Source: Macrostomum lignano
Taxonomy: Eukaryota
Direction of reading: 5' to 3'
Length of the DNA stretch: 64,000 bases
Assembly (NCBI GenBank): GCA_002269645.1
Contig: NIVC01002473.1
Location: 107,087-171,086 of the forward strand
Positions 2,731-32,508 of the stretch are shown here, in pieces. Position 1 is the stretch's first letter; each line of letters starts with the position of its first letter. Made by a program: the position numbers and the translations under genes. The notes below the pieces were generated by a model. The model did no database searches, was not told the DNA's origin, and saw only the letters and a list, made by a program, of their open reading frames with translations.

Positions 2731-3123
2731 CAAAATTCAAATTCGTCAGCTGCAGCCAGGGCTCGAACCAGGATGACACAAATTACATGTGCAACAAGGC
2801 TTATGATGGCAAACTGGATTCAGATATAGGGTATCTATTAAACTGCGCTCACACGGGCAAACAAAACACCTGGTGGAAGGCGAAGACTGATAATCCCATG
2901 CTCTTCATGTACGTCAAAATCTACAACCGCGACATGCTGAGGGAGAGACTGACAGACTTCGAAGTGATCATCGACGATAAGAATGTGTGCAATCGGTACA
3001 AAGATTCGACACAATTCGCCTATAAGACTCTGAAATGCGACGGATACGGACATGAGATCATGGTGAAAAGTTACCTGCCTCAGCTGACGATCTGCGAGTT
3101 CGAGGCTTACGGAAAACCTTTGC
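2731..3123 (+). CDS. F-type lectin (fucolectin-like) domain exon 1
   Basis: AG at 2729-30, GTGAGT at 3124, 393 nt, phase 1-1. Motifs CAHT..NTWW, VKIYNRDMLRERL, LTICEFEAYG. Confidence 0.8.
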
Positions 3124-3320
3124 GTGAGTTCGACTTTGTTTTAGCTATTATAGAAAAAAGGAATAGTCGATGTAGTAACAAATATTTATGACTATTTATG
3201 TAAAGTCTACGCTTGCGCGCGGAAAATGGTGGCCACTGTTTTGCCTTGTCTACTCAATATATTTGGTCAGTTGACAGTGCAAGTGGGGGTGATGTGTGTG
3301 CTTGATCGTGACTTGGTCGG

Positions 3321-5742
3321 ATCGAAAATTACACGATACGCGAGTGTTGCGTCCTACTCACGTATCGTGTAATTTTTATTGGAGGCCTGGTCTTCACATA
3401 CATGTAATTTTCGACTAGTTGCACGTAGAAAGCTGATTCTTTCGGTGTTAGGTCCAGAATTTTGTTTTTCGTTAAAATGTCAGTGATAAAATAGTAGACT
3501 ACATTTATAAGCAGCGTACAGTTAAGTACAGTGAAAACAACCCAATTTCGTGCATTTTTGTGTAAAATACGCCAAATTTTCTTTAGAAATTTGTCAGTCT
3601 GTCACAATTCCTAGTCAATACTCAATAGCGAAAACGAGTTTTTAGTTTGTAAACTAATAATCTCATTAAGCAAGTGTAAAATAAAACAGTTTATGTATTA
3701 TAGAAAATATCACTGTCAAATGCCATTGGTTTATTTATTACGAGTATCAAAAAAGTTAATAAATTTGTGGCCTGCGTTAGAGTGAGACAAAACGGAAAAC
3801 AAACTCGACAAAGCATCTGCGACGAAGCAGAAATTTACCCGAAGGACCAGGACCTGGATCTGGATCCTGACCTAGATTTGGCTTTTTTTCAACACTAAAA
3901 CTGAGCAGCCCTGAGCAGCAAAACTGTTCCAAAAATCCACAGGTTTAGTCAAAATTTAAGTGATGGCTGATTCAAAAACAAACACAAACATCCGAGCCAA
4001 TCGAGTTGAGCAACACGGTCGCAGTGATGAGAACAGTCGGTAGCACAGTGCGGCAAAAACCAGGAGCCACTCTGGAGGCTTGCGCAGCTTGCCTCTCGAT
4101 AGTAAACGCGTGAACTCACAATCAGCGGGCAACTGAATTGGAGAATTCGAATCAGCTTGGCCACTGTCTTCTGAAACTGGGATCTGCTCCTTGCGAGCTA
4201 CATATCCGCATACATAGTACAGTGCCAACTGTTCTTCATCAGTGGGTATGGAGGATTCAGCGCTGTCTTTCGAAGTCGAAACTAGATCATTGAGATGTGC
4301 AAGTTCGTCGTCCGACAGCTCACCATCGCAACAAGCTGCTCGCGGGTTTCCGAAGCAACCCTCCTCGCGTTGGACCAACCAACTTGACATCCAGGCTGGC
4401 TTGTCTACCACAGCGGATGCAAAGTTCTCCCAGCCTCCAATTCTATCCTTTGTATTAAAGTCCTGTAGTTCATCAGGCATTTGTTGACAATGTGACGCCA
4501 GAATACAACGTTCAGTCACATTTCTAGATGACACTGAAATAATGCAATTGAGTGACAGCGCTGACTTATATTGAAAGCATTATTTAAAGAACTTTGGCAA
4601 AAATGTACCTGCAAATGTTTGCCGCATAGAGTGAGCTAGGTGGGCACATAAAGACAGATGGTGGGTCAATAGGTTGAAAATATCGCTTGATTTTTGTAAG
4701 CCTTGCATCCTTTGGCCAATGCTTTTTGCATATTCCCATGTGTTTGGTGACATTCTCGAATGATATAAAGTAAAAAAGTATTTTAAATTGCACATTTATA
4801 TGTTTATGAACCTTGTTTATCACTTAATAACCTATATAGCGCTAAATGAAATGTTATTGGTCAAAGATTTCTTATAGGTTTTATTTATAATAGCTGTAGG
4901 CCTATTAGTGTTTATACTATTTAGCACATTACAAGTTTCAAATTAATTCCTAGTGTTAGTTAATAAACAAGCTATTTAATGAAAAACATGGCTTTAAAAC
5001 TTTCTAACTACTAGGGGTAGTCATTAACATAAATAAGGTTTTTACTAATAGAAATATTTCAGTTTCAACTACAATGGGCCTAACAGACATGACATAGAAA
5101 TACATAGAAATACATAGAAAAAAAGCTTCCATTTTAATGTCAATTTCTAGAGTGTAAAATTTGAGAAACCCAAAAAGGCAAAAAGTGACTTTGGAAAAAT
5201 TGTCACTATTTTCTTGACTTATATTAGAATATAATAGGAGAACACACCCAGTCAACTATAAACAAGCCAAGCTTTCATGATGGAAGATTCCTAGACCATT
5301 TTTTCATATCAAATATGATGTTCTATATGTTATTTTTCAGAAAACAAAATTTAATTTTAGATGCAATGGTATTTGCAACCTAGAGCTATAATAACTATAA
5401 AAAAATGCTTTGTAAACATGGTCTCTTGTTGACAATTGTGATATAAAGAAACCATGTTTGTCAGCAAAAAAGAAAACAAGAAAACCAGTAGCTATTTCAC
5501 AAATCCAAATTAAAAAATGCATATTGTTATTGGCCATTAAGGGAACGTGATATAATTATTTTAATTAATAGGTGAAGTCAGCTTATCAAGTTTAGTAAGA
5601 AATGAAAACCTGAATGGTTTATTACAACACACACAGTCCTGTGCTCTATGTAGCGGTCGAATCCTAGGCTTATGTACGTAGAACTTTATACGGCTTACGG
5701 GCCTCCAAAAAAATTTCCACGAAAGCTGAGTGTCGCGTCCTA
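3321..5742 (-). mobile_element. Internally deleted THAP/P-element-like DNA transposon
   Basis: THAP-like C..HW..P.F segment (4584-4823) directly followed by a P-transposase C-terminal-like segment (LYYVCGYVARK, SRGKL; 3956-4534). Imperfect inverted repeats at ~3356-3387 and ~5700-5742. Confidence 0.65.
3956..4823 (-). pseudogene. THAP domain plus P-element transposase C-terminal remnant, catalytic core missing
   Basis: ICKKHWP...PIDPPSVF and LALYYVCGYVARK...LLSRGKL in two adjacent ORFs. Confidence 0.65.
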
Positions 5743-6398
5743 TATATAACGTAACTACTTAAGTTGTCCTTGTGTCACAAATGAGTTCCGACAAGAGCTC
5801 CATTACAACGCTTGAATGATTCTCCGCTAATGATGTTTACCTAGCGATCGACGGACGGGGATTCCATTTGCCGCTGAATGGCCGCACGAAAACAGAGACT
5901 TTAGCGCGTAGTATGTTCTAGATGTTGATGTTCTAGATGTTTGCCAAAATAGAATGGAAAAAGGTGTAGTGCGTAGTATGTTTTAGTATGCTGTAAGAAT
6001 GACGACATTCTAGTCTGTGAAAAAAAACCCGGGAAAATTTAGCCGATGTGATGAATACAATATGAATATATATTGCATGCACGATAAGCAATTATTTAGG
6101 CCCTAGACAAACCTACTTGGAGCGTTCGGAGATTTTAAAGCTAATCGCCTATCGCCGGTCGGCGAGTCCTACCAGTCTTTCTCCAATAGTCACAGTACGG
6201 TACAAGAAAAGGAAGAATGCCGATGAACACGAACCGAATAGATTTAGAGAGTGATAATCCTATATGATACAGACTGATAATTGGCTAGACGATTTAATTT
6301 GATTACTTCAAGTTACAAGCTTCAATGCAATTCGCGGCGCAGATAATTTCGAACTGATAATAGCGGAAAATGATATCGAGACAAACGATTAATAATAA

Positions 6399-9300
6399 CC
6401 CACGTAACCAAGAATCTCGCCAAAGGCTTGCGTCCCCATCGCGTGGCAATATTAGGCGATATCTCGCCTGGCGATATCTAAGCAATATCTAAGCGATATC
6501 GATCGGCGATAAATCAATACGATAGGAAATTGCCTCTAAAGTCCTATATATATGTCTAAAAGACACTAAAACGAAGTTCAAACCTATATTGGCCCATCTT
6601 GCGCGCATTCTTGCGAAATCGCCAAAACCTTGAGTTTCGATGCCTTGGCGATAATTGCACCATCGCCGAGCGATAGAACAACGTTGGGAATGCGATCCAT
6701 GCTTAATTCACATGTATTTTAGCCCACTCGACTTATAAATTCGCAATTTAAGGTCACTTCGTGAATGGTGAGTTGCAAGCGAGTGATGCTCTTCTGTTTT
6801 AGCATTATCTTCTTGGTCTATCGTACCGTACATATAAACAAGTTCGTGCATCGCGGCGCGATATTTTAGCGGTTGGCTGGCGCTGTTTTTAAGTTCATCT
6901 TGAAACTTTGATGCCAATAAGATGTATATCAAGTTAAATTTGCAGTTTTGATATATAAAAATAAAAAATATGTTCTTTTGTCGTCTTGTCCTGCTTTGTG
7001 TTTCTGACTGCAAAATTCATTTATTAATTTGATAAAATACGCGTTAAATGTATGCTCTTTTAAAAATGACGCTGCACAACTATAGTCAGAGGTCTTGATC
7101 GAATTAAGACAGATCATTAGATCGCATGTTCCCTTTTTACATATGTTATACATGTCTTACGCTCAAGATTATTTGTGAAACAAAAAACTGTGGTAAATAG
7201 TGGTAGATAGTAACAGTAGTCCAGTGCTCAGAGTTTTATTTTGTCAAACTGTGTTTTTAGCACTTCATTTTTAGATTTCTTTTGCACATCCAGATGCCAA
7301 TTTTGCACCTCGAAATGTTGGTAGACGCATACTTTTAATTACATTTCTAGAAATCAAATGCATTTTGGCTCTTTTAGAGAAATTATAACTATTACTGAAC
7401 TTAGATCAGTGCCAACTGCCAATGTAGTTGATTAGGGCCTAACTTAAATTTCCTTCATTGTTCATTTCAATTTCAACCTGATCTAGCATTGATTAGGTTT
7501 TGGAAAATTCTAAATAGCTAAACTAGCTCCAGCCTATATTCTACAAGTAGAAGATAGCTTTTGTGGACTTATTAAGGATCAGATGTATAAAATACTTGCT
7601 GATGTCCAAATCTTAAACTGCTTTTGTCAAATGTCAATACTACTACTAATGTAAAATTTAGGATTTTGGAGGATTTTTGACAAGTGGAAATTTTTATACC
7701 TAGCTATTAATGGTGATATTGATCTTCTTGAATAGAACAATAGGCCTTTCCAACCATAACCCATAGGCCATATTCCCCATGGTCCAAGTATTAAGGTTAA
7801 CTTGTTTTAGACCTTGACTTATTGTTAAATGCTAATTAGAAACTTATTTTATAGAATATAATGGCCATTGATCTTGAAATTAGATAGAACAGTGAGTCTC
7901 TATTAAAGATCAGTTACAATATAGGTAGCTAGTAGTCTATACTATATATGGCTATAGTTTATTGTCATTTTTCCATATCTATAATTTTTGACTTAGCCAT
8001 TTTCTTATGCCATGGTTTTTGGTGTTTAGGTTAGCTACCCTAGGGCTAGGCCTAGTCATTTCAAATTGACTAGATCTCAATTTTTAATATATTTTATAGT
8101 AGCTATTTATCTTAAATAGAAAAGTGGGCTTCTTTTAAAGATTAGGCTAGGCCTAATACTATATTAATACTATATTATATTACACTTCTACCTACCCTAA
8201 CACCCTGTTCCCTATACAGGTTATAGCTATGGTACTTAGCATTGATATTAGGATTATTCTAGTTATTTTTTGTAGTAAAAATGGATGCATTATTTGAACT
8301 CTCCATACCAAAAGACCTCTATTTAGACTATAGCTACAAATTTATGAACTGATATAAAATGGAACTATCCTAGTTATTTTATCATTTGGACCAAAAATGC
8401 TAGTTTTACTGGTTTAATAAAATTTGTTCACATCTTTATTTATGCAAGCAATTATATCCTTTCTTTCAGCTGTTCTACAATCTCAATTTTGGGGGCCAGT
8501 TTGTCAAGTATGCTCCCGAAGCATGAATTATCAGCCTACCAACATGCCAATGGCCTTGAGTGAGCAATGAATGACTGAAGGTCCTCAGAAGCAAAGGTTC
8601 AATTCCGGAGACTGACTGGGAGGCCCATTCCTGTACCATCCTGTCAAAGTGTGGTAAATAATTTTAAAGTTCTAGACTTCCTTTGAATTACTTATTTGGT
8701 GACTAACTGAACTGCATACTTCTGATGTGGGTGATATTCTGCACAAGCATGATAAGTCAAAGTAACTGGAATTTTACTTTGTTACATTTAATTTTTCCAT
8801 TGTGAAGTAACCAATATTTACTGTCGAATTGCTTGTTAAAGAAGTCAGAAATATTTAATATTTTGTTTTTTTTAGTCATCTGGGTTTTTCACCTTAGACT
8901 TCAAGTCATGTAATGACGTGACCGTCATTCTATTAGCATGACCAAATTGAGACGGGTTCATGCCAGCCTGGTATTTTCAAGAAATTTTATTGTTATGGGT
9001 GTCATTTTGACTTGGCTTAGGTTTTGTAAAGGGCAAAAATTTATTAAGTTACGAATTTTGAGTCATTTAAAGATTCGAGGAGTCTGACAAGAATGCATCA
9101 TACTTGTCAAATGTATGTTTTTTCTTATTGCCAACCAGCCCAGCATTTGTCTTCAATATTTGTCAAATGAAAGTCTTTAGTGCTCAAGTCTAACTATTGC
9201 TATTTTCCTCCTATATTATATTTTTCTCTCCCTGCCTGCTGCATATTTATAGCTGAATTTTCACCATACATGCTGCTGTAAGTAGCATCATTAGAAGTAA

Positions 9301-9653
9301 AATATATATTCAAAAATCGGGAGGCATTAATAAGAACTTGTGGAGTTTTCGTCTCCAGCGACTTAAAGGAAAGCTATAGGCTATCTGATGGAATAATAAA
9401 TTTGCAGTATTGAGCTGTGTCTGTTGATTCTTTCAATCATTTTTAATGCTATCATTTAAACAAGAATTATAACTGTATCGTCAATTCATCGCCAATTGCT
9501 CGCCAAACGATATCGCCGGGCGATACGGGACGATATCGCCCCTGCGGACAGCCGCGATATTTCGGCGAGATGAGGGCGATCGCTCGGCGATGTTTAGACG
9601 AATCGCCGGGCGGTATCGCCCCGATGTGGAGGCGAGGTTTTTGGTTATGTGGG
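6399..9653. mobile_element. Non-autonomous CMC (EnSpm/Mirage-like) DNA transposon, 3255 bp
   Basis: 23-bp TIRs CCCACGTAACCAAGAATCTCGCC / GGCGAGGTTTTTGGTTATGTGGG (20/23 match), 2-bp AA TSD, GCGATATC-rich subterminal repeats. Empty site with a single AA at 1501-1502. Confidence 0.8.
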
Positions 9654-10574
9654 AACTTAGTTACGCAATGGCAAGCAGATCTCAGCTTGAAGAAGAAAAA
9701 CCGAACACGACCAACGGAGAAGACTCCTAACCCCTGGCCTAAACCAGAACCTACACTCAAACGAGAGCCCTGCCGAATTGACCGTTCAACGGAGCACTGA
9801 CTAAATTCTATCAGCACTGCCCTTCAGTGTGACACTGATCGAGGCCCTCTGGGTCGAGGCCACGTACTTGGTCAAATCCGACAGTCTCTATCTAACCGCG
9901 CTTGATAGCGACGACTTCAGACAGGAATCTGCCGCATACGTTACGCTACAAGACTGAAGCAGTCGGGCAGGGGACAAAAATATGGACCGGGGGTGATGAA
10001 CTCAAGCGCCTCAAAGCGCGAACCAAAACAATGGCAAGCGGCCGGAAAGCCGGGACAAAAATCAAAACCGGGGACGGAAAAACAGAAGTGAGATCTGATT
10101 GCCAAACACACTTTCATATATAGTCAGAGTCAAACCCTCACAACCCCCCTCAAGCCGGGTGGTGGTCGTCTGGCCGGCCGCTCGCTAAGCCGATTTGCAC
10201 TGTGCCCGCGGCGCCGGGTAGACTTGGATTTTGCCGGGTGCCAGGGTCCAGGCCGGTTCTGATTGGCTGGCCGCGCAAAGCTGGGGTTCGCAGAAAAACT
10301 CAACCCTCCGCTGAGTCACGAAATGGCGTCTGACTTCTAACTGGTTTACAAATTTAAATTTTAACTAACAAGAAAAAAAGTACATTAGACCGCGTGACTA
10401 AATTGAAGCAAAATAATAATTAACAATATTTAAACTGATACAATCAATTAACTAACAAAATACACGCAAAAGATGCTCACACTACACCGACAAGACGCAA
10501 AAAATACTTAAAAGGCTGCAAGAGAATGACATCACACTGAATGCTTCTGTTTCCAAGCTTCAACAGAAGCCTGG

Positions 10575-11114
10575 TTGAAGCGAATGGGAGTGCTACACCT
10601 CAAGTCACCCAGATACCTTCCCGCTTCGAATGGAGTAGTCGAGGTAGCAGTGAAAAGGCTGAAGACCAAGCTAAAACAGCTAAACGATCCAGACCCGGAA
10701 GTTCGAATGCAACAAACTTTGTACGCCATTCGAGTCTGCCCAAGAGCCAACGGTGTCGCTCCGTGTCGAGAAATGTTTGGGCGCCAGTTTAATACTAGAC
10801 TGTCACTGCTACATCGTCGGTCGTTCCAGCACAAGAAAACAGATCAAATTCACAGTCCTGTTTGGGTCCAAGATCCCTTCAACAAGGAGTGGAGGGAGGG
10901 AGTACTTCAAGAAGCGGTTGGAGAACAGCTGAGACGAGTACAGGACCATAGAGGACGAGATCTGGTGGTGCACCGGAACCATGTCAGAGACAGAGCCGAG
11001 GCTGAAACCCACAAGCCTATCCAGGACGATGAAGAACCAAGTTCAATTCAACCTTCGGAGTCCAGGTACCCAGTGCGGATCCGGAGAGCATTGGACAGGT
11101 ACCAATCATCTTGA
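10575..11114 (+). pseudogene. Gypsy-type LTR retrotransposon integrase, C-terminal part
   Basis: SPRYLPASNGVVEVAVKRLK (integrase core end), APCREMFGR, VWVQD...WREG, HRNHVR. Confidence 0.85.
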
Positions 11115-11126
11115 AGGAAAGAGGGA

Positions 11127-11405
11127 TGATATGACGCGACTATAATATTGATATTATTTTAATTGCATATGCAGTTTGACGCGTTTTGTTTTATCTATGG
11201 ACTAAATGAAGCTGCAAAACAGGCTTGGGTTAAAATCCCGCTGTGAGAATGTGGAATAAAGAGAAATAAGAGCAAGACTAAGAACCTTGGAGCCGCGGAA
11301 ACGTCTGCTAGGATATCAGCACTAATAATTAATGCCTTAAGTATATTGAAGACTTTAAGTAACCTGAAGACATAACAATACATGTGTCCCAGAGTTGTAA
11401 TAACA
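11127..11405 (+). mobile_element. 3' LTR of the Gypsy remnant
   Basis: Polypurine tract GAAGGAAAGAGGGA (11113-11126) directly before TGATAT...ATAACA; internal AATAAA. Confidence 0.75.
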
Positions 11406-11889
11406 TCCTGCATCGCTGAATATACTACCGAAAGGTATAAAATCTATCGTTAATAATCAGTTTCATTCAAAAAAGCACAATAACGACATAGACAGATTCT
11501 TTAACGGCAGCAATTAGCTGCCGAAAAAAATCTGTATATATCGTTACATTATATTATTATTTTATAAATTATATATTATTAAGAATTTAATCAACCGCAG
11601 CGAAATAGGCACCAGCGGTTCACAAGGTAGCCCTTAGAACACAGTGGGTGGGTGAGGCCTACCACCTCAAACCAGCACCGACCCCCGACAAAGACAGTCG
11701 TTTCTTTTAAATGGATTTCTGTATAATGCATTTCTGCATAGCGATAAATTAGGGTTTTAACAATGACCAGAAAATTCCACAAAAATCATTCCAGAAAAAA
11801 TAAGCCAGGGAGACTAGAGCGGCAGAAATTTCGTAAGAACTTTGCTTGCTTGCCAGTCTTAGGTAGCATTTCATAAAAATTTCGGTCTG

Positions 11890-12426
11890 GGGGGTGTTTC
11901 TCGAAACTCACGTAAGTTCTATGGTAAGTTAGATCGTAAGAAAGAAATTTACGTGTAGCGTAAGTTTGCTCGTAAGACGCTTTCTCAAAACTCACTTAGA
12001 CTTTGCGTGGCTTACGCTGTTCGTAAGTCGTATCTGAAACGAAAAGTTGCATGTCTATGGTCATAAATCTGCAAATATCTTTACTTTAGTCTATCGTAAG
12101 TTGCTTTCGAGAAAGACTCACCTTCGATAAAGTTTAACTTGACTTGGCTTGACTAAAGCTTCACCACGTACTATGCGATTAGTGCTTAAGTGCGTCTTAC
12201 GACTGATACCGAGCTGTCGTAGGGTTAAGAATCAAGATCAACCTTACGAAAGACCATAGACATACGAACGCTTCGAGAAACAGTCTTTTGCGCAAAGTTA
12301 CGAACTCGTAAAGTTGCGATCAATCTTACGCATAGCTAACTTGCGAGCCCTTCGAGCAACCCGTAAGTGTAGCTTACCCAACTTACGTCTATGGTCGATT
12401 GTAAGTTGCTTTCGAGAAAGACCCCC
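11890..12426. mobile_element. PIF/Harbinger-like MITE
   Basis: TIRs GGGGGTGTTTCTCGAAA / TTTCGAGAAAGACCCCC with a 3-bp CTG duplication on both sides. Confidence 0.75.
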
Positions 12427-12665
12427 CTGAAAAATGCAGTTTTACTAGAGATTAACTGCCAAAAAACCGCTCAACTTGTTAATAGTGTTTACTAGCAGCA
12501 GTGACTATCCATTCGCAGTAAACGTGCTATTTTAGCATATACGAGTAGACATACACACCCATACAAAGTTTCTGATTGGTCCGTCGAACAGCTATTCATA
12601 CCGTAAATATATTTGTGTTTCGGTGTACATCTGAAATTTCAACTGCCACTCTCCATTCAATGCAG

Positions 12666-13058
12666 CAAAATTCAAATTCGTCAGCTGCAGCCAGGGCTCG
12701 AACCAGGATGACACAAATTACATGTGCAACAAGGCTTATGATGGCAAACTGGATTCAGATATAGGGTATCTATTAAACTGCGCTCACACGGGCAAACAAA
12801 ACACCTGGTGGAAGGCGAAGACTGATAATCCCATGCTCTTCATGTACGTCAAAATCTACAACCGCGACATGCTGAGGGAGAGACTGACAGATTTCGAAGT
12901 GATCATCGACGATAAGAATGTGTGCAATCGGTACAAAGATTCGACACAATTCGCCTATAAGACTCTGAAATGCGACGGATACGGACATGAGATCATGGTG
13001 AAAAGTTACCTGCCTCAGCTGACGATCTGCGAGTTCGAGGCTTACGGAAAACCTTTGC
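12666..13058 (+). CDS. F-type lectin domain exon 2 (same protein sequence as exon 1)
   Basis: AG/GTGAGT, 393 nt, phase 1-1. Confidence 0.8.
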
Positions 13059-14011
13059 GTGAGTTCGACTTTGTTTTAGCTATTATAGAAAAAAGGAATA
13101 GTCGATGTAGTAACAAATATTTATGACTATTTATGTAAAGTCTACGCTTGCGCGCGGAAAATGGTGGCCACTGTTTTGCCTTGTCTACTCAATATATTTG
13201 GTCAGTTGACAGTGCAAGTGGGGGTGATGTGTGTGCTTGATCGTGACTTGGCCGGATCTAGAGTTCCAACAGACGCTTTCAGCCCACGAGCCTGGGGATT
13301 GCTTCAGTTCACTGACCGGAATGCCTGCAATAGCTGAGCGTTGTAAACGTTGTACATTGCGTCGAGGAGAAAAGTTCAAAAGGCGCGCTCCCCCTTGCTC
13401 AACTCCAATACGTATTTCTATTTTTCACAAACAAATCCTTCCTCAAACCTCTAGGGGTTTGGGATGAGGACTCACTTCCTTTTTTCAGCCCCTGATTGGT
13501 CGGCACAAGCGCGTACACAATGAATTGAATCATAACTGAAGCACGGGGAAGCGTCGGTAGGCAGTTCAGCCAATCACACAGAAAGTGAGGTGGGGCGGTC
13601 GCAGGGCTGGCGCGTAAACATCGTAGTATTCAGCGATTAGGGACGCCAGACAAAGCGGCGGGTCGTGGGCATATGAGGAAAAGTGCAATGACGGCCGCAC
13701 CCCTCACTGAGGGCTGAATAGATCGCTCAACAGTGCAAGTACATGCCGGCACAACAGCAGCACTAATTTAGGCTTTAACAAAGACCAAAAAAGCCACAAA
13801 AATCCTGCTAGAAAATATTTCACAAAAGAAACAGGAAAAACAGAAAGTTGAAAGAAAATTTGCTTGTTTGCCGGTCTCAGGTGGCATTTCATGAAAATCC
13901 TGTTTCATAAAATTGTGAACGTAACTGTAACGAATGTTTAGAAGGTGCAAAAGACTGCATGTTGTCAGAAGGTTTTTTTTAACTTTCAACTGCCACACAT
14001 AACCCATGCAG

Positions 14012-14404
14012 CAAAATTCAGGTTTGTCAGCTGCAGCCAAGGCTCGAACTGGGATGGCACAAAGCACTTGTGCAACAAGGCTTATGATGGCAAACTGGAT
14101 ACAGGTAAATCAGGTATATTAAACTGCGCTCAAACTGACAAGCAAGACACCTGGTGGAAGGCGAAAACCGAAGTGCATGTGCGCTTCATGTACGTCAAAA
14201 TCTACAACCGCGCGACTCTGAGGGAGAGACTGACCGACTTCGAAGTGATCATCGACGATAACAACGTGTGCAATCGGTACAAAGATTCGAAACAATTCGC
14301 CACCAAGATTCTGCAATGCGACGGAATCGGACAGGAGATCATGGTGAAAAGTCGCCTGCCTCGACTGGCGATCTGCGAGTTCGAGGCTTACGGAAAAGCG
14401 CTGC
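14012..14404 (+). CDS. F-type lectin domain exon 3
   Basis: AG/GTGAGT, 393 nt, phase 1-1; CAQT, YNRATLRERL. Confidence 0.8.
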
Positions 14405-15249: not shown

Positions 15250-15304
15250 ATAATCCAGAGGGGGGTGCTTGTGCGTGGCACATTATCGATGGTGGAGAAG
15301 GGTG

Positions 15305-18222: not shown

Positions 18223-18615
18223 AAAAATTCGAGTTCGTCACCTGCAGCCAAGGCTCGTACTGGGATAACTTGAAGCACGTGTGCTTCAAGGCTTATGATG
18301 GCAAACTGGATAGAGGTACATTAGGTATATTAAACTGCGCTCACACGGACAACCAAAACACCTGGTGGAAGGCGAAGACTGATAATCCCATGCACTTCGT
18401 GTACGTCAAAATCTACAACCGCGACATTCTGAGGGAGAGACTGACCGACTTCGAAGTGATCATCGACGATAAGAACGTGTGCAATCGGTACAAAAATCCA
18501 AAACTATTCGCCACCAAGGTTCTGCGATGCGAAGGATACGGACATGAGATCATGGTGAAAAGTTACCTGCCAAAGCTGACAATCTGCGAGTTCGAGGCTT
18601 TCGGAGAACCAATGC
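18223..18615 (+). CDS. F-type lectin domain exon 4
   Basis: AG/GTGAGT, 393 nt, phase 1-1; CAHT, YNRDILRERL. Confidence 0.8.
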
Positions 18616-19024: not shown

Positions 19025-19026
19025 TA

Positions 19027-19177
<151 letters not shown>

Positions 19178-19321: not shown

Positions 19322-19717
19322 CAAAACTCAAACTCGTCAGCTGCAGCCAAGGCTCGAACCAGGATGAAACAAATTACTTGTGCGACAAGGCTTATGATGG
19401 CAAACTGGATACAGGTAAATTGGGTCTATTAAACTGCGCTCACACGGGAAAAGAAAACACCTGGTGGAAGGCGAAAACCGAGTTTCCTGTGCGGTTCATT
19501 TGCGTCAAAATCTACAACCGCGAGATTCTGAAGGAGAGACTCACCAACTTCGACGTGATTATCGACGATAAGAACGTGTGCAATCGGTACAACAAAAGTT
19601 GGAGTCGATTTGCCACTAAGATTCTGCGATGCGACGGATACGGCCAGGAGATCATGGTGAAAAGTCGCCTGCCTCAGCTGACAATCTGCGAGTTCGAGGC
19701 TTACGGAAAAGCACTGC
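19322..19717 (+). CDS. F-type lectin domain exon 5
   Basis: AG/GTGAGT, 396 nt, phase 1-1; CAHT, YNREILKERL. Confidence 0.8.
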
Positions 19718-21814: not shown

Positions 21815-22183
21815 CTAAACTCAAGTTTGACGGCTGCAGTCAGGGCTCGAACGCTGATGACGCTAAACACCTTTGCCATGAAGCTTTCGATAGTTCTCTA
21901 GCCCAGTGTGCAATCACCAATAGTGACAACACCTGGTGGAAGGCACAAACTTCACAACCTGTGTGGTTCATGTTCGTCAAAATCTTCAGCCGTGCTAAAC
22001 AACGGGACAGTCTGACCAACTTTGAAGTTCTAATCGACGAAAATGTTTGCAATCGGTACAAAGATTCAACAGAATTCGATACAAAAATACTGCCTTGCGG
22101 CGGATACGGACATGAGATCATGGTGAGGAGTCACCTGCCCAAGCTGGCGATCTGCGAGTTCGAGGCTTACGGAAAAGTGCTGC
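21815..22183 (+). CDS. F-type lectin domain exon 6
   Basis: AG/GTAAGT, 369 nt, phase 1-1; CAIT, FSRAKQRDSL. Confidence 0.8.
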
Positions 22184-24830: not shown

Positions 24831-25229
24831 AAAAACTGAAGCTTCATGGTTGTCGCCAGGGCTCAAACTTGCCTGGCGGAAAGAACATGTGTTATAAGGC
24901 CTACGACGGTAAGTCAAATGAAGATGGCTCTCTATTGAACTGTGCACGAACCGGCGATCGCAAAACTTGGTGGATGGCAAAAACTCAGCAACCCGTGCGG
25001 TTCAACTATGTCAAAATCTACAACCAGCTCAAACAACGAGAAGGGCTGACCGACTTCGAAGTGATCATCGACGATAAGACAGTGTGCAATCGGTACAAAA
25101 ATTCGACGGGATTTGCTTCAAAGATTCTAAAATGCGACGCGTACGGTCAGAAGATCATGGTGAGAAGTAACCGGCCCAATTTGACGATCTGCGAGTTCGA
25201 GGCTTACGGAGAGACTGTACCTTCGGAGA
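24831..25229 (+). CDS. F-type lectin domain exon 7
   Basis: AG/GTGAGT, 399 nt, phase 1-1; CART, YNQLKQREGL. Confidence 0.8.
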
Positions 25230-25518: not shown

Positions 25519-25800
25519 CCCTATGAAAAATTGGCCCGAATTTTCACCCTTCTCTTCACCCGAAATCGTCAGCACTTTGCGGGTGTAAAAATTGCCGGGC
25601 TACTGGCCCGGAATCGTTACGAAAAGTTCGCTTTTCGGGCGATGCACCCGTGCATGCACCCGCATTTATACCCGAATATTTACGGGCGATTCACCCAGAA
25701 TTATTCTGCGCCGAGAAATCCGGGCCAGTTAACCGATATTTTGCTGTCTAATCCGGCCCGAAGAGCTGGCCATATTTCCTGCTTTGATTTTCTCATAGTG
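25519..25800. mobile_element. Possible CACTA-like MITE
   Basis: CCCTATGAAAAAT / ATTTTCTCATAGTG ends and internal CCCG-rich repeats; no clear TSD. Confidence 0.35.
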
Positions 25801-26275
25801 CACGATAATTATAGTACGTTTTTTGAGGGCATATAACTTTACAGTGACTGCCAATTTTTATACTGCAAAACTTGTATGTATCTAGATAGTTTAATAGGAA
25901 GATGTTGCACGTAAATGACCCACCCCCTCCAAGAGATACATATCGAGAAAAAAATAAGACAATTCTGGAGGGATTCAATAAGAAATTTAGATAGAAAATG
26001 AAGGGGCTTGACATAGAGAAATGCTGAAGAAAACCATAAAAAGGAGAAATAACTAACTGTAGCTATTCATAGGGCATTTGCAGCTAAGAAATAACCAAAT
26101 ATACTAGTACGTTTGCGACTGAAAAGAGGTAGATTTAAGGCACAGAGTGCAGGGAGAGGGTGCACACAGGATGCACATGTGAAAATGCATATAGTATTCA
26201 CTTTTCAAACACTGAAAAATATTTCAAGTTATGGCGCAAGTTAACCATTCAATTATTCTTGACACAACTCAACAG

Positions 26276-26680
26276 AAAAACTGAAGCTTGTCAGCTGCGA
26301 ACAGAATACAGATCGGGATAATAGTACTACCTGCGATAAAGCTATCGATAATCGGTTAGAATATGGAAAAGAATTGGGAGACCACTGCGCAATCACCAGT
26401 CGCAACCATTCGAATACCTATTGGTGGGCGCGAACTGAGCACCCTGTGCGGTTCACGTACGTCAAACTTTACGACCGGCTCGACTTTAAAAACAAGCAGA
26501 CTGACTTTGATGTTCTTATCGACGGGAAAAAAGTGTGCACTCGATACAAACCTACGGATAGATTTGCTTCTAAAATTCTGCGATGCGATGGATACGGACA
26601 GGAACTCAAGATAAGCACCGCTGCTGGACAGCTGACCGTCTGTGAGTTCGAGGCTTATGGACTGACCGTGCCTACAGACG
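26276..26680 (+). CDS. F-type lectin domain exon 8
   Basis: AG/GTGAGT, 405 nt, phase 1-1, open by manual translation; CAIT, YDRLDFKNKQ. Confidence 0.8.
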
Positions 26681-26916
26681 GTGAGTCGAAGCTGATTTCT
26701 TCTGATAAAGCGATAGACATGCAACTTGAGCTGTTTCTGGACCAGTTTAGAGGTTTTTTTAAAGCAATGAAAACGCTATGCGTTTAACAAAAGTAGCGGA
26801 AAAAGTTTCAGCACAAATTGACTACACAAGGAAAAGTATACCAACGAAAAATAGTGCCATATATCATATTACGAACTAAAAGCACCCCTTGTTTAAAATA
26901 CAAATATTTTTTTCAG

Positions 26917-27321
26917 AAAAGTTAAAGTTCGTCAACTGCAGCCAGGGCTCGAACTGGGATGGCACAAATCACTTGTGCAACAAGGCTTACGATGATAAGC
27001 TGGATACAAGTGAGCCGGGTTCTGTTATAAACTGCGCTCACACGGGCAAAGAAAACACCTGGTGGAAAGCGAAAACCGAGCATCCCGTGCGGTTTAAGTA
27101 CGTTGTAATCTACAACCGCGCGACTCGGAGGTATAGACTGACCAACTTCGATGTGATCATTGACGAGAAGAACGTGTGCAATCGGTACCAGAGTATATTT
27201 TTCTTTGCCTATAAAACCATGCGATGCGACGGATATGGCCAGGAGATCATGGTGAAAAGTCGCCTGCCGAAGCTGACGATCTGCGAGTTCGAGGCTTACG
27301 GGGAAACGGTACCTACTGAGG
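26917..27321 (+). CDS. F-type lectin domain exon 9
   Basis: AG/GTGAGT, 405 nt, phase 1-1; CAHT, YNRATRRYRL. Confidence 0.8.
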
Positions 27322-27438
27322 GTGAGTAGCATATGATACTCTGCTGAAAGACGACAACTGTGTGACAACGCAACTTGTACATGCTTTTTAATCGCTTTTT
27401 GCCATAGTTGTGTTATCGGTGGTCTGACTAATTAATTA

Positions 27439-28199
27439 TAGCTTTTGGCAGCCTATTTGGGCTTACGCGCATTTAATTTAATCCAAGATACGTTTGCCAA
27501 TGCAACAGAGCTTTTGTCTATGGTAGCAAGACTGCCACAGCGCCACTCAATTTGGTCCAACAAGCATCAATTTGGTCCATAGCTTTATTTTCAACTGTTG
27601 CGGAGGAGCAACACCAGCCCCAGAATTGTGAACCATGCTAGGTTGTCGAACGTATGCCACTGGCTTGTGATCAAAGCACTCAACAGAGGTGAACACCCAA
27701 AGGACATTGCAAGGCTGCTGAATATAGAAGAAAAATGGTTTACAGCATCCATCAGCGTGTTGAAACCACTTCTGGCATAGGTCGCCTGTGGAAAGGTGGC
27801 AATCGCCTCGGCAAGTTGCTAGAGACTCAGGTCCAACTGCTACTTAATGCAATTGAGACGAACCCTTTGTTGACGTTGCAGAAAATGCAGCAGCAGTTGA
27901 AGTTACAGTTCCAGTTGGTTATCAGATTTGGACTATCAGCAGAGCTCTGGAAAAGCGACTGGAAACTGCTGGTACAGACGCTGACATTCCAGCGGTGCGC
28001 AACAACCCTTAGGCGGTTGCGAGAAGGCAAGAGTTTGCCACTGGCTCACGAGCATTTGGACCAAATTGATGCTTGTTGGACCAAATTGAATGCCGCTGCG
28101 GCAGCCTTGCTACCATAGACAAAAAAGCTCCATTACATTGGCAAGCGTATCTTGGATTAAATTAAATGCGCGTAAGCCCAAATAGGCTGCCAAAAGCTA
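27439..28199 (+). mobile_element. Tc1/IS630-like non-autonomous element
   Basis: TA TSD, ~120-bp TIRs TAGCTTTTGGCAGCC.../...GGCTGCCAAAAGCTA, frameshifted HTH remnant. Confidence 0.75.
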
Positions 28200-28549
28200 T
28201 ATTATTCCTATTGCCATCAAAATGGCTCGTATTAATGTTTTTTAGTGTAGCAAAGCTATCAATCTGCAATAGTAAATCCAGATTTTTATCGGGGCGCGAT
28301 TTCTGGATTGCCATCGATTGAGTCAGTACAAAGGGGCGCTGACTAGGTAGGGGGTGTGGGAGCTCGGCATCTTTAATCGACATCTTAAGCCAAACCTTTT
28401 ACAGTGTAGGCATCCGTTTTCAGAATTAGTTTGTACTCATTGATCACATCACTTATTCTATCTGAATTAATTAAGGTCACAGACAAGCAAAAGTACAAGA
28501 TGAACTGAATGTAAAGTACATGAATAATATACTTCTCACAAATTGCCAG

Positions 28550-28951
28550 ATAAAATCCAGCTTATCGGCTGCAGACAGGGCTCGAACTTGAACAGCACGG
28601 AAAACTTGTGCGATAAGGCTTACGATGATAAGCTGGACGATCCAGATAACCCCATTCAGAACTGCGCCATCACCAATATTGACAACACCTGGTGGAAGGC
28701 GAAGACTGAATATCCCGTGCGGTTCGTGTACGTCAAAATCTACAATCGGCTCACGCATCGAGACACACTGACCGACTTCGAAGTTGTAATAGACGAGAGG
28801 AACGTGTGCAACCGGTACAAAAATTCGACACAATTCGCCTCCAAGACTCTGCGATGCGACGGATACGGACATGAGATCATGGTGAGAAGTCACATGCCTC
28901 AGCTGACGATCTGCGAGTTCGAGGCTTACGGACAAAAATCAATACGTCATG
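28550..28951 (+). CDS. F-type lectin domain exon 10
   Basis: AG/GTGAGG, 402 nt, phase 1-1; CAIT, YNRLTHRDTL. Confidence 0.8.
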
Positions 28952-29074
28952 GTGAGGACAAGATCCGTTAATAACTCTGCTTTGGTTCCTAGTTCAGTAA
29001 TTACCTGACCTTTTCGTCCATGGTAAATCTACAATAATTTCAAGCGACCCCTCTAGTCGGAACTCAAGCCTCGC

Positions 29075-29997
<923 letters not shown>

Positions 29998-30425
29998 GCA
30001 TTTCTTCTACAACGCTTCTAAAACTCAGGTATATTAGCAAAGAAATTGAATGGTGCAAGCGAAATGTCCTCTTCAAACGCAGAGCATTGCACCCTTTTAC
30101 GATGCGAATAAATTTGAATTGTTTTCTATACAGTTTTTTATGGGAACATTTACAATTTCTCGAGACAGCAAAGGTTTTTTATTAGTCTACTATGCAAACA
30201 AGAGCGCCAAAACTCTCATGTCTTTTTAAATTGAAAGGTTCAATGCAATCATGAGAATGATTTGATGGCTAGGTTACCAATCAAAGCTCGTCTACATCTG
30301 CCCGTTCTGCCTTTAACTGAAAAATCGCGACAAAAATTAACTTGGATGACTATAAAATCACAAACAAAAAACCTAAACCTTGTAATAAAGCAAACAGTTT
30401 ACTTATTCCTTTTTTATCTTGACAG

Positions 30426-30830
30426 AAAAACTCAAGTTGGTCAACTGTAGCCAAGGCTCGAGCTTAGACGGCATCAAGCACTCTTGCGACAAAGCTTACG
30501 ATGATAAGCTGGACGATCCAGATAATCCCATTCAGAACTGCGCCATCACCAATAATGACAACACCTGGTGGAAGGCGAAAACTGAGCATCCTGTGCGCTT
30601 CATGTACATCAAAATCTACAATCGGCTCACGAATCGAGACACACTGACCGACTTCGAAGTTGTAATAGACGAAACGAACGTGTGCAATCGGTACAAAGAT
30701 TCGACACAATTCGCCTCCAAGACTCTACGATGCGACGCATCCGGACAGGAGATCATGGTGAGAAGTCACCTGCCCAAGCAGCTGGCGATCTGCGAGATTG
30801 AGGCGTTTGGAGAAACTCTTCCGATGGAAA
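30426..30830 (+). CDS. F-type lectin domain exon 11
   Basis: AG/GTGAGT, 405 nt, phase 1-1; CAIT, YNRLTNRDTL. Confidence 0.8.
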
Positions 30831-31070
30831 GTGAGTACGATATTGATTAAGAGCACAAGGAATTATTATAATCGATTACACCTTTAACTTCCTATTTGGA
30901 CAAAACTCATGTGTTAGCATGTGGAAGCAATTATTTAATATTATTTAGAAACTCAAATGTATAAGTACAGTTTTTACTATTATGAGTCATAGGGTATTCT
31001 TAATAACTGATAGAAATATCCGTTCGTCTTCAATAAAATCTACTCCACTCCAACAAAAACCATTCAGCAG

Positions 31071-31469
31071 AGAAGCTCAAGCTGACCAACTGCAGCCAGG
31101 GCTCGGATAAGTTCAGTTCGACTTCTCTCTGCGATAGAGCTTACGATAATAAATTAGGCGACACGCTGGACCACTGCGCGCTGACCAATGCAGACAACTC
31201 CTGGTGGAGGGCTCAAACTGAAAAGCCCGTACGGTTTATCTACGTCAAAATCTACAACCGATTGACAAAGGAACGTCAGTCTAGACGGACAAACTTAGAA
31301 GTGATCATTGACGAGAAGAAAGTGTGCAATCGGTACACAGATTCGGAATACTTTTTGTCGAAAACTCTGAGATGCGATGGATACGGACAGGAGATCATGG
31401 TGAAAAGCAATATTCCATACTTGACACTCTGCGAGTTTGAAGCCTACGGAGAGTCTTTGCCTGCCGAAG
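31071..31469 (+). CDS. F-type lectin domain exon 12
   Basis: AG/GTAAGA, 399 nt, phase 1-1, open by manual translation; CALT, YNRLTKERQSRR. Confidence 0.8.
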
Positions 31470-31559
31470 GTAAGAACAAATCAGTTTAGTGCAAACGCGT
31501 CTTTGAAACCTAATTAATCTAAAATTCAAAATTAATGTTTACGTATTATCACGGAAATT

Positions 31560-31927
31560 AAGGAGGGCCGTAGCCCAGCGGTCTAGCGCAGGCTCTGGTG
31601 TGCCAGCAACCCAGGCTCGATTCCAAGTGCAGTCACAATAATTTGGGGCTGAATTGGAATCTCTGTTTGGCTCTGCTCGTGACATTAACGGCCTTGAGAG
31701 CCAACCCCCCAAGGCGCAGTGAAGTGTACATGCCTAACGATAATATAAAGTTAGGGCCGCTGTACACTCCTGTGTGAGTGTGTGCCTGCGTACGTATCCG
31801 CGCGCTTGTATGCCCTGCTCAGGGGAGTCGGCGGAATGGGCAGCAATGCCTCTCGCCGGTTGTGTGCCTATGTCGCTTAAAGTGCGCCAGGGTGCACACA
31901 GCCCCCCCCCTGCCTCTAATAAAAAAG
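31560..31927 (+). mobile_element. tRNA-derived SINE family A
   Basis: A box TAGCCCAGCGG, B box GGCTCGATTCC, A-rich tail, 11-bp TSD TCACGGAAATT. Two more copies in the window. Confidence 0.85.
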
Positions 31928-32104
31928 TCACGGAAATTGTAATAATTCTATGTGATAAGCTGTTTTCGACAAGTATATTGAGAAGTGTCCGAAAATTCTC
32001 CGATCCGAATTGATACAGTGTTGGTTAATACTGTCAACTCAGGAATGCAATTGATGCTTTTATGCTTATAATTTAAAAGGAATTTTTAATTCGGGAACCC
32101 TCAG

Positions 32105-32508
32105 ACAAGTTGCCTCTGACGCGTTGCAAACAGAGCTCATCATACTACACCCACACGTGCGAAAAAGCTATTGATGACCGCCTGGAAGATCCGTCTACTC
32201 ACCTGCAGACCTGCGCTTTTGTGGACAGTGCAAGAGCCGGCTGGTGGAGGGCGGCCACCGATTATCAGGTGCAATTCATGATGGTCAAAATTTACAACCG
32301 ACTCAATCGACGATCCGGATTGACCAACTTTGCCATCTATATTGACGAGAAAAGCGAGTGCAGTCGGTATAGCAATGGCGAAGAGTTCAGCTCCAAGGCG
32401 CTACCATGCGAGGGTGTTGGACAGGAGATCATGGTGAAAAGTAGCCTGGGATATCTGACCATCTGTGAGCTAGAGGCGTTCGGAAAATTTCTGCCCCAAA
32501 GGCAGTAA
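32105..32508 (+). CDS. F-type lectin domain exon 13 (probable terminal exon)
   Basis: Phase-1 AG acceptor; divergent domain ending FLPQRQ*; AATAAA shortly downstream; no phase-1 donor. Confidence 0.75.

Follow-up and report, generated by a model that had tools for sequence, protein, structure and literature searches.

What does a row of 13 homologous, lectin-like exons in a flatworm genome encode, one protein or many, and for what purpose? The window, that is, the whole 64,000-nucleotide stretch of DNA analysed here, is NIVC01002473.1:107087-171086 of Macrostomum lignano (assembly Mlig_3_7). A sequence-only reading had proposed a giant multidomain F-type lectin or a splice-diversified receptor, at a locus for innate recognition. 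F-type lectins are known as immune opsonins, as bacterial toxin modules and as sperm bindin in oysters, and M. lignano, a hermaphroditic flatworm in which RNAi and transgenesis can be used, serves as a laboratory model for sexual conflict. The locus probably holds a single gene, with all exons joined, for a secreted 14-domain lectin of a prostate-expressed family, which would cross-link fucosylated glycoconjugates as a putative seminal-fluid protein.

The exons belong to one annotated gene

A tblastn search with one repeat as query returned exactly 13 strong plus-strand copies (E 1e-40 to 1e-98) and no comparable further copy elsewhere in the window. Reading of the exon boundaries agreed with what had been described from the letters alone: 13 homologous exons, all on the + strand, of which the first 12 have AG/GT flanks, lengths of 369-405 nt divisible by 3 and phase 1 at both ends, and the last ends in a stop codon (TAA at 32506-32508). 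Exons are numbered in window order, window exon 1 being exon 3 of the gene and lectin domain 2 of 14; the triad listed with them is the basic His/Arg/Arg motif considered below.

2731-3123, + strand: lectin exon 1 (gene exon 3, domain 2 of 14), 393 nt, phase 1-1; triad and acidic residue intact
12666-13058, + strand: lectin exon 2, 393 nt; one synonymous base different from exon 1, a recent tandem duplicate
14012-14404, + strand: lectin exon 3, 393 nt; triad His replaced by Gln
18223-18615, + strand: lectin exon 4, 393 nt; triad intact
19322-19717, + strand: lectin exon 5, 396 nt; triad intact
21815-22183, + strand: lectin exon 6, 369 nt, with an 8-residue loop deletion; triad lost (Ile / Arg / Ser)
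24831-25229, + strand: lectin exon 7, 399 nt; triad lost (Arg / Gln / Gly)
26276-26680, + strand: lectin exon 8, 405 nt; triad His replaced by Ile
26917-27321, + strand: lectin exon 9, 405 nt; His/Arg/Arg kept, no acidic residue
28550-28951, + strand: lectin exon 10, 402 nt; triad lost (Ile / Arg / Thr)
30426-30830, + strand: lectin exon 11, 405 nt; triad lost; domain used for the AlphaFold2 model
31068-31469 (or 31071-31469), + strand: lectin exon 12, 402 (or 399) nt; triad lost
32105-32508, + strand: lectin exon 13, the terminal coding exon, 404 nt including the stop; no hydrophobic tail
32542-32547, + strand: AATAAA polyadenylation signal, 34 nt past the stop codon, read from the sequence

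The two versions of exon 12 reflect an in-frame tandem acceptor, CAGCAG, with the annotated site at 31068 and the alternative at 31071. Exons 8 and 13 are the most divergent repeats (41-54% and 41-52% identity to the others). Phase 1 is found in each of the 12 internal exons of the window, in the domain-0 exon upstream and at the donor of the signal-peptide exon; because the exons are paralogues, this common phase and length are inherited and do not represent 13 independent coincidences.

The window matches locus L002 18042-60549 (NIVC01002473.1) at 100% identity, and its 13 exons correspond to exons 3-15 in the annotation of the gene BOX15_Mlig002920g1 (PAA57549.1, 1875 aa, UniProt A0A267E9Q8), which spans 40.5 kb. 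Spliced together they give a single open frame of 1718 aa, close to the ~1700 aa anticipated for inclusion of all exons and the same as residues 158-1875 of PAA57549.1, the sole difference lying in the choice of the exon-12 acceptor (NAGNAG). No start exon is present in window positions 1-2730, which hold satellite, TTAGGG-like repeats and other non-coding sequence. The sequence-only reading had likewise seen no start or signal-peptide exon in the window and had suggested looking upstream, and there we located the signal-peptide exon, MTKLLGSLLVAVALAVYGNERTYA (donor G|GTGAGT, phase 1), 8.0 kb from window base 1, and a 14th lectin exon (domain 0) 5.4 kb from it. In the gene model, the signal-peptide exon is followed by the 14 lectin exons, joined in order. 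These results confirm the 13 repeats as real exons of one gene, for which GenBank and UniProt already carry a hypothetical 'FTP domain-containing' protein.

The repeats are divergent F-type lectin domains

We compared the repeats with the F-type lectin domain (FTLD; SMART FTP, Pfam PF22633 F5_F8_type_C_2). A profile of 12 repeats had six matches at E<=10 among PDB sequences, all of them F-type lectins and five significant: FBP32 (3cqo) was the best at E=1.4e-12, with lectinolysin (4gwi, 3e-5; 3le0, 5e-5) and fucolectin-related proteins of S. pneumoniae (2j1r, 3e-5; 2j22, 7e-5) also found, and eel agglutinin (1k12) reaching only E=0.87. An HMM search of each exon had been proposed as a check: single repeat domains alone fell below Pfam thresholds, and PF22633 scored 34.1 and 35.7 bits (cut-off 27.8) on the whole homeologue/paralogue proteins P0001 and P0002, not on P0004 itself. 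An AlphaFold2 model of the exon-11 domain is all-beta (pLDDT 80, pTM 0.77), and its ten best Foldseek matches in the PDB are all F-type lectin domains (including 2j1r, 3le0, 2j1t, 3lek, 4gwi, 3lei, 4gwj, 2j22 and 1k12), a result tempered by moderate TM-scores (0.45-0.65) and a low-confidence loop region at 10-45. The profile search, Foldseek and PF22633 together bear out the original assignment, and the exons encode divergent F-type lectin domains.

For fucose binding, we searched for the basic triad His ... Arg-x-Asp-x4-Arg/Lys. His/Arg/Arg is present in 6 of the 14 domains (domain 0 and exons 1, 2, 4, 5 and 9), and exons 1, 2, 4 and 5 also have the acidic residue and the R-D-x4-R spacing seen in the FBP32 C-terminal domain. 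The remaining eight lack the His, the second Arg or both, with exon 7 also lacking the first Arg; loss of the triad from some tandem domains is known among accepted members of the family as well (PMC5712786). The calcium motif h-h-D-G-x reads A-Y-D-G-K in domain 0, exons 1-5 and exon 7; its Asp is invariant (14/14 domains), and in exons 6 and 8-13 its Gly gives way to D, N or S. No repeat has the Cys-Cys pair. The six triad-bearing domains would bind fucose, their spacing being like that of the Cys-Cys-less C-terminal domain of striped-bass FBP32, and the eight triad-less ones may bind other ligands or serve as spacers. The whole protein would be a high-avidity, multivalent cross-linker of fucosylated glycoconjugates.

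The architecture is that of a secreted protein

The 1875-aa protein consists of a signal peptide and 14 tandem F-type lectin domains separated by linkers of 3-8 residues. Its N terminus, MTKLLGSLLVAVALAVYG, has, judged by eye, the hydrophobic character of a signal peptide, and its C terminus reads ...FGKFLPQRQ before the stop; no transmembrane segment, later hydrophobic stretch or other domain was found along its 1875 residues. Of the two options first offered, the giant multidomain lectin is shown by the RNA-seq-derived gene models, and the receptor is not supported by a product with a signal peptide but neither a transmembrane segment nor another domain. This architecture points to a secreted multivalent lectin and not to a receptor.

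Prostate expression suggests a role in seminal fluid

In Table S11 of Brand et al. 2020, the primer pair RNA815_14112 (probe length 521 bp) is labelled 'prostate' with reference to Lengerer et al. 2018, and RNA815_471.4 has the same label. The forward primer of RNA815_14112 matches the domain-0 exon exactly, and the reverse primer lies at the 3' end of exon 1/2 with its last base in the next exon, so that the predicted spliced amplicon (127+393+1 = 521 bp) has the reported probe length. As the three sister loci are 95-99% identical, this probe would hybridise with each of them, and the same table lists it under Mlig031901.g2 and not under Mlig002920; what the staining shows is thus prostate expression of the gene family, and not of BOX15_Mlig002920g1 specifically. 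In the files searched, the named transcripts Mlig-pro1-76 do not include this gene. Of the criteria of Weber et al. 2018 for prostate-limited transcripts, or putative seminal fluid proteins, two are seen here, namely a prostate in-situ signal and predicted secretion; a third is transfer to the partner in the ejaculate. As in-situ primers labelled 'prostate' map to the gene across an exon junction, we consider its product a putative seminal-fluid protein. Its most likely role would be that of a lectin transferred in the ejaculate to the mating partner, where it may bind glycans on sperm or in the female antrum.

This evidence also bears on the proposed innate-recognition locus. On this view the protein would be an immune agglutinin, a humoral or mucosal pattern-recognition lectin that, like the F-type lectins of fish and horseshoe crabs, cross-links fucosylated glycans of microbes. 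A secreted, multivalent protein with no other domain would fit, and the characterised F-type lectins include many opsonins and agglutinins (PMC5712786, PMC12221842); staining of the prostate would in that case be incidental, or a sign that the lectin protects the ejaculate against microbes. We consider this unlikely, as the in-situ signal in the prostate gland is the only expression evidence found and favours reproduction over immunity, and for these probes no staining of gut, epidermis or pharyngeal glands is noted. Searches of other published supplements recovered neither infection-response data nor the gene ids.

Public gene models join consecutive exons

In the reading that we consider probable, the mRNA joins all exons in order and encodes the secreted 1875-aa protein. 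The BOX15 models were built from RNA-seq only (StringTie/TACO, de novo transcriptome, TransDecoder; PMC5730564), and that of BOX15_Mlig002920g1 rests on short reads, which cannot phase 14 similar exons or distinguish exon 1 from exon 2. Among RNA-seq-based models, P0004 holds all 15 exons, P0001 exons 5-13, and P0005 exons 1 and 3-13. No isoforms differing in homologous exons occur among the short-read-derived public models of the three sister loci, a weak test, and the deposited annotation at the sister loci apparently has one model per gene, so that skipped isoforms could go unseen. Donors read GTRAG in 12/12 cases and GTRAGT in 10/12, and all acceptors are CAG.

As the sequence-only reading pointed out, subsets of exons could be skipped with the frame kept, because the internal exons are all in phase 1-1. 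Cassette-exon diversification, in the manner of oyster bindin and loosely of Dscam, would use this symmetry to produce many isoforms that differ in the number or combination of domains. There are precedents, as oyster sperm bindin, a reproductive F-lectin repeat protein, shows 1 to 5 repeats by alternative splicing (PMC5712786) and Xenopus tropicalis LOC100491211 has several predicted isoforms of 529-2055 aa. Closer to this locus, P0002 links exon 6 straight to exon 11 in frame, but this ab initio-style model stems from an assembly that is older and fragmented, and its chimeric exon 3/5 and doubled exon 12 suggest assembly or locus differences, not splicing. P0005 has one of the two exon-1 copies found at its own locus, but the copy it misses is one that short reads cannot distinguish. 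Against these, P0004, P0001 and P0005 keep every consecutive exon that they span, the GTRAG donors and CAG acceptors are unlike typical weak cassette sites, and no observation implies a mutually exclusive choice in the Dscam sense. We thus find cassette diversification quite improbable and the suggested Dscam-like exon choice, or any combinatorial splicing at the locus, unsupported; exon skipping itself, given the bindin precedent, seems unsupported rather than refuted.

More speculative still is a flatworm counterpart of oyster bindin, in which exon skipping, unequal crossing-over between the near-identical N-terminal exons and fast evolution of binding loops would create seminal-fluid lectin repertoires that vary between individuals. 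We regard it as a long shot; if true, the variable lectins of this hermaphrodite would, under sexual conflict, target glycans of the partner or of sperm.

The array may have grown by tandem duplication of one exon

Exons 1 and 2 lie in a segmental duplication.

1501-3323, strand not given: copy 1, carrying exon 1; 99.6-99.7% identical to copy 2
9654-13258, strand not given: copy 2, carrying exon 2; with a 1.8-kb insertion at 10203-11989

An open reading frame inside the insertion (10575-11114) looks integrase-like by eye and has no Pfam hit.

Both exons are present in PAA57549.1 and at sister locus L003. Two sister loci, 95-99% identical, have the same exon order; pN/pS between sister loci is 0.15-0.36 per exon, and dN/dS among the young repeats is 0.55-0.95. 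An assembly artefact or dead pseudo-exons in part of the array, for example with the exon 1/2 pair a falsely duplicated haplotype, would fit the near-identity of these exons and 1.8 kb of their flanks and the known high redundancy of the DV1 genome assembly (PMC5730564). We find this very improbable, since the doubled exon 1 recurs at L003 on another contig and in P0010 and P0007 (models from an independent older assembly), copy 2 has an insertion of its own, and the exons at all three loci are free of stop codons and frameshifts, with differences biased towards synonymous ones.

The array would have grown as a one-domain exon of phase 1-1 was repeatedly duplicated in tandem, with the youngest group at the N terminus (domain 0 and exons 1-5, plus exon 9) and the exon 1/2 pair as probably the latest event.

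Comparison with known systems

A seminal-fluid lectin of this kind would be a second, independent case of a reproductive-tract protein made only of F-lectin repeats, and would offer a tractable system for the effects of such lectins on sperm or partner. The locus would also be a clean textbook case of domain-array growth via tandem phase 1-1 exon duplication, with three sister loci to compare.

The sperm bindin of the oyster Crassostrea gigas is, like the flatworm gene product, a reproductive-tract protein of a signal peptide and tandem F-type lectin repeats only; in both, the His/Arg/Arg triad is kept in some repeats and lost in others, repeats duplicate within the gene, and transposon-like sequence adjoins them (PMC5712786). 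Whereas bindin has 1-5 repeats, each split by a highly variable intron, the flatworm gene has 14, with one exon per repeat. Bindin is a protein of the sperm acrosome, the flatworm gene is reported in prostate gland cells, and alternative splicing and extreme polymorphism are demonstrated for bindin but not for the flatworm gene.

The C-terminal domain of striped bass FBP32 / MsFTL1 (3cqo) shares with the flatworm repeats the loss of the adjacent Cys-Cys pair and the R-D-x4-R spacing; Cys pairs equivalent to C38-C122 and C86-C102 align, and repeats of the FBP32 gene are also flanked by phase-1 introns (PMC12221842). The flatworm domains differ in having one more Cys pair, at the N-terminal end (C7, C20), and one residue fewer in the loop that follows the His, and FBP32, unlike the flatworm gene, has two domains, each in two exons, and is a serum and liver opsonin.

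Drosophila Dscam1 resembles the flatworm locus in its arrays of homologous exons on one strand, with one domain-sized unit per exon. Its exons are mutually exclusive, with one per cluster in the mRNA, and it is a membrane receptor, whereas the flatworm model includes its exons serially and lacks a membrane anchor.

Long F-lectin arrays are already predicted in other animals: secreted proteins with ~12 or more tandem domains include Xenopus tropicalis LOC100491211 (1800-2055 aa), Gigantopelta aegis LOC121376881 (2619 aa) and Nucella lapillus KAL8585202.1 (2865 aa), the first two with 12 matched stretches each, and the 13-14 domains seen here are thus not unprecedented. These giants are uncharacterised database predictions from phyla distant from the flatworm, and the Xenopus (P0013) and Gigantopelta (P0022) proteins mostly keep the canonical NRxDCC motif, unlike the flatworm domains. 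The arrays of Xenopus, Gigantopelta, Nucella and the flatworm almost certainly expanded independently.

A fourteen-domain lectin gene

Searching the whole window with one repeat (tblastn) recovered 13 strong copies on the + strand, with E values from 1e-40 to 1e-98, and no comparable copies elsewhere in the window. Exon limits were then set by looking near every copy for AG acceptors and GT donors that keep the frame.

Lectin exons in the window, each defined by tblastn and splice sites
2731-3123, + strand, exon 1
12666-13058, + strand, exon 2
14012-14404, + strand, exon 3
18223-18615, + strand, exon 4
19322-19717, + strand, exon 5
21815-22183, + strand, exon 6
24831-25229, + strand, exon 7
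26276-26680, + strand, exon 8
26917-27321, + strand, exon 9
28550-28951, + strand, exon 10
30426-30830, + strand, exon 11
31071-31469 (or 31068-31469), + strand, exon 12
32105-32508, + strand, exon 13

Exons 1-12 are 369-405 nt long, each divisible by 3 and in phase 1 at both ends, and exon 13 closes with a TAA stop at 32506-32508, with AATAAA 34 nt downstream. As splicing all 13 in silico yields a single, uninterrupted frame of 1718 codons, the sequence-only reading had described the array accurately. Donors read GTRAG in 12/12 cases and GTRAGT in 10/12, and every acceptor is CAG, that of exon 12 being a tandem CAGCAG. Exons 1 and 2, one synonymous base apart, sit in a segmental duplication (1501-3323 = 9654-13258, 99.6-99.7% identical), the second copy of which (9654-13258) is broken by a 1.8-kb insertion. 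We considered and rejected an assembly artefact, as the doubled exon 1 is also found at a sister locus (L003) and in an older assembly.

The introns between lectin exons contain long microsatellites with tetranucleotide units, (ACAG)122 at 29243-29730 and (ATAG)38 at 19026-19177. The largest intron of the gene, between exons 1 and 2, encloses a 192-aa minus-strand ORF (3956-4534) that is called as a 190-aa gene on the contig and annotated at L003 too; it bears a faint resemblance to the P-element transposase C terminus (E=0.16) and is probably a transposon remnant.

Among the cluster members from the homologue search was a full-length model, P0004 (PAA57549.1, BOX15_Mlig002920g1; 1875 aa), named 'Fucolectin tachylectin-4 pentraxin-1 domain-containing protein' in UniProt. 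Its residues 158-1875 are the splice product of the 13 exons, with the sole difference that the annotation takes the 31068 acceptor. The gene is already in public annotation, as a hypothetical protein, and BOX15 models derive from RNA-seq only, via StringTie/TACO, a de novo transcriptome and TransDecoder (PMC5730564), so it is transcribed and spliced at these sites.

The start exon had been expected outside the window, which is the end of contig NIVC01002473.1 (assembly Mlig_3_7, positions 107087-171086), and we located it upstream of the window. That contig, on which P0004 lies, matches the window at 100% identity over 42.5 kb. Searching window positions 1-2730 for a start or signal-peptide exon found none; the stretch is all non-coding and includes a 23-bp satellite and TTAGGG-like repeats. 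The signal-peptide exon (MTKLLGSLLVAVALAVYGNERTYA; sequence starting ATGACGAAATTGCTTGG...) is found 8.0 kb before base 1 of the window, with a G|GTGAGT donor in phase 1, and is followed, 5.4 kb upstream of that base, by a further lectin exon, domain 0, with AG/GT flanks and phase 1-1. The gene thus comprises a signal peptide and 14 lectin exons across 40.5 kb. The satellite (14 copies, 1-327, at the window start) and the telomeric TTAGGG-like repeats, a short interstitial run at 1078-1140, ~1.6 kb upstream of exon 1, both fall inside the 7.8-kb intron between domain 0 and exon 1.

The repeats are F-type lectin domains

Single repeats matched nothing significantly in Pfam (best F5_F8_type_C, E=0.085), so a profile and a structural search were required. 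Against PDB sequences, a 12-repeat profile gave six matches at E<=10, all F-type lectins and five of them significant: FBP32 at the top (3cqo, E=1.4e-12), the Streptococcus pneumoniae fucolectin-related proteins 2j1r and 2j22, and lectinolysin (4gwi, 3le0), with eel agglutinin (1k12) reaching E=0.87 only. PF22633 scores above its curated cut-off in P0001 and P0002, close paralogue/homeologue proteins of the gene, and the ten best Foldseek matches of an AlphaFold2 model of one repeat (pLDDT 80) are all F-type lectin domains. These three lines of evidence support the F-type lectin identity first proposed from the sequence.

Six cysteines are invariant across the repeats, two pairs aligning with conserved cysteines of FBP32 and the N-terminal pair being extra. 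The fucose-binding His/Arg/Arg triad is retained in domain 0 and exons 1, 2, 4, 5 and 9, accompanied by the acidic residue in exons 1, 2, 4 and 5. Each of the remaining eight domains has lost at least one of the His and the second Arg. Arrays mixing triad-bearing and triad-less domains are normal for the family (PMC5712786).

Probably one giant protein rather than a choice of exons

The architecture had been read as either a giant multidomain lectin or a splice-diversified receptor, with a Dscam-like choice among exons as one possibility. RNA-seq-derived models all take consecutive exons: P0004 joins all of them, P0001 part of exon 5 plus 6-13, and P0005, another M. lignano model, 1 plus 3-13, its absent copy being one indistinguishable to short reads. 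The sole discordant model is P0002, from the older assembly, in which exon 6 is joined to exon 11, exon 12 occurs twice and one exon is a chimera of 3 and 5; these features may reflect differences in assembly or locus rather than splicing.

The same assembly contains three sister loci (L001, L003 and that of the window), 95-99% identical and with the same lectin exon order, consistent with the known redundancy of the DV1 genome (PMC5730564). L003 carries all 13 window exons in unchanged order, doubled exon 1 included, and the range retrieved for L001 covers exons 4-13. Absence of exons 1-3 from L001 was rejected: its upstream 7.4 kb is the counterpart of the longer intron 3 of L003, so these exons merely lie beyond that range. 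Between loci, exons are 97.5-100% identical and free of stop codons, with pN/pS of 0.15-0.36, so no exon looks dead.

Consecutive-exon models from short-read RNA-seq, GTRAG donors and exons with no sign of decay therefore favour the giant multidomain lectin; exon skipping may in principle occur, and none of this evidence supports a Dscam-like choice.

The sister loci also differ by kb-scale intron insertions (3.4 kb in L001 after exon 5; intron 3 longer in L001 and L003), and exon 4 of L001 differs from the window copy by 8.5 non-synonymous versus 1.5 synonymous changes, unlike other exons.

A predicted secreted protein of a gene family expressed in the prostate

With its signal peptide, and with neither a further hydrophobic stretch nor a domain of another type, the protein is predicted to be secreted, which argues against the receptor suggested earlier. 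In Table S11 of Brand et al. 2020, two primer pairs for in-situ probes are labelled 'prostate': RNA815_14112 (a 521-bp probe, citing Lengerer et al. 2018) and RNA815_471.4, assigned to Mlig031901.g2 and Mlig029438.g2, respectively (PMC7336406); Mlig031901 and Mlig029438 are the transcript clusters of two sister loci. The RNA815_14112 forward primer matches the domain-0 exon exactly, and the reverse primer lies at the 3' end of exon 1/2, its last nucleotide being the one that opens the following exon. After splicing, an amplicon of 127+393+1 = 521 bp is predicted, exactly the length reported. Primer positions and amplicon length together confirm the domain-0-to-exon-1 junction and donor use at the cDNA level, and the primer mapping connects this gene family with the 'prostate' pattern.

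Prostate-limited secreted proteins of M. lignano are regarded as putative seminal-fluid proteins (PMC5977470). Given predicted secretion and the in-situ pattern, the gene product is most likely a secreted, multivalent lectin of the seminal fluid, for which we infer transfer to the partner and glycan binding. The innate-recognition locus proposed from the sequence fits this pattern poorly, and the protein is probably not primarily immune. In the main texts and supplements of M. lignano papers searched for gene ids, Mlig031901 and Mlig029438 occur only in Table S11 and Mlig002920 itself was not found; the lectin transcripts are also absent from the supplements of Weber et al. 2018.

Evolution of the array

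Domain 0, exons 1-5 and exon 9 form a group at 64-75% pairwise identity, exons 10 and 11 share 76%, and the outlier exons 8 and 13 are 41-54% identical to the others. The young N-terminal group has dS of 0.17-0.25 and dN/dS of 0.55-0.95, and older comparisons among repeats give dN/dS of 0.13-0.5. In predicted loops, variable columns are slightly over-represented (Fisher p=0.04, a weak test), in keeping with selection that was relaxed or diversifying following recent duplication. Repeats and transposon fragments abound in the introns and are the type of substrate that would favour unequal crossing-over.

Neighbouring sequence

Immediately after the lectin gene comes a minus-strand region, 33255-37775 (ORFs 33813-35330, 35285-35773 and 36888-37775), which encodes N-terminal ankyrin repeats (Ank_2, E=1e-61) followed by a part that weakly matches Mab-21_C (E=1.4e-4); ORF 35285-35773 contains the motif GS...DSDID. 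The gene appears to fuse ankyrin repeats to a Mab-21/cGAS-like nucleotidyltransferase, and its equivalent is called as a 1073-aa gene at L003, with no call on the window's own contig. Minus-strand exons of a flotillin/Band 7 (SPFH) gene follow at 42132-45022 (ORFs 42132-42692 and 44456-45022; Band_7 E=2e-16), interleaved with strongly C-rich tandem repeats (44156-44431 and 45104-45574) that account for a spike in GC skew (-0.41, 44-46 kb).

Over the final 18 kb of the contig (about 46000-64000), GC content falls to 27-38%, compared to 40-50% elsewhere, and both strands carry long intronless ORFs. ORF 51823-53517 has an endonuclease VII domain (E=8e-7), ORF 54100-55539 has PolB-like motifs read by eye (KLMNNAFYGKT, YADTDSLVF), and ORF 59048-59674 has a weak phage tail-fibre-like match. 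Searches of Pfam, PHROGs, PDB sequences and IMG/VR confirmed the endonuclease VII domain alone, and neither a polymerase nor a capsid protein. Its sequence suggests that the block is an insertion of virus-like or Maverick/Polinton-like type, or else foreign DNA at the contig end.

Comparison with known F-type lectins

When homologues of the repeat alignment were sought with a word-indexed search, there were no matches; two single-sequence searches returned M. lignano proteins only, and an exhaustive profile search of representative sequences found 545 relatives. According to reviews, characterised F-type lectin proteins have at most about five tandem domains (PMC12221842); the relatives include predicted proteins with at least 12 in Xenopus tropicalis, Gigantopelta aegis and Nucella lapillus, so the array has precedents of similar length. 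Further F-lectin proteins of M. lignano have canonical NRxDCC motifs plus Kringle or WSC domains, and our literature search found no paper discussing F-type lectins in Macrostomum. The closest known domain to the repeats is the C-terminal domain of FBP32, which likewise lacks the adjacent Cys-Cys pair and has the R-D-x4-R spacing; FBP32/MsFTL1 share with the flatworm gene this Cys-Cys-less domain type and phase-1 introns around the repeats (PMC12221842).

The closest system is oyster sperm bindin, a reproductive protein made of 1-5 F-lectin repeats, whose diversity comes from positive selection, recombination in introns and alternative splicing (PMC5712786). The two differ in repeat number, in cell type and in the intron that bindin has inside each repeat, and isoform diversity is demonstrated in bindin, in contrast to the flatworm gene. 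In oyster bindin introns, microsatellites adjoin each repeat exon and are proposed to promote repeat duplication (PMC5712786), a likeness to the microsatellites between the lectin exons described here.
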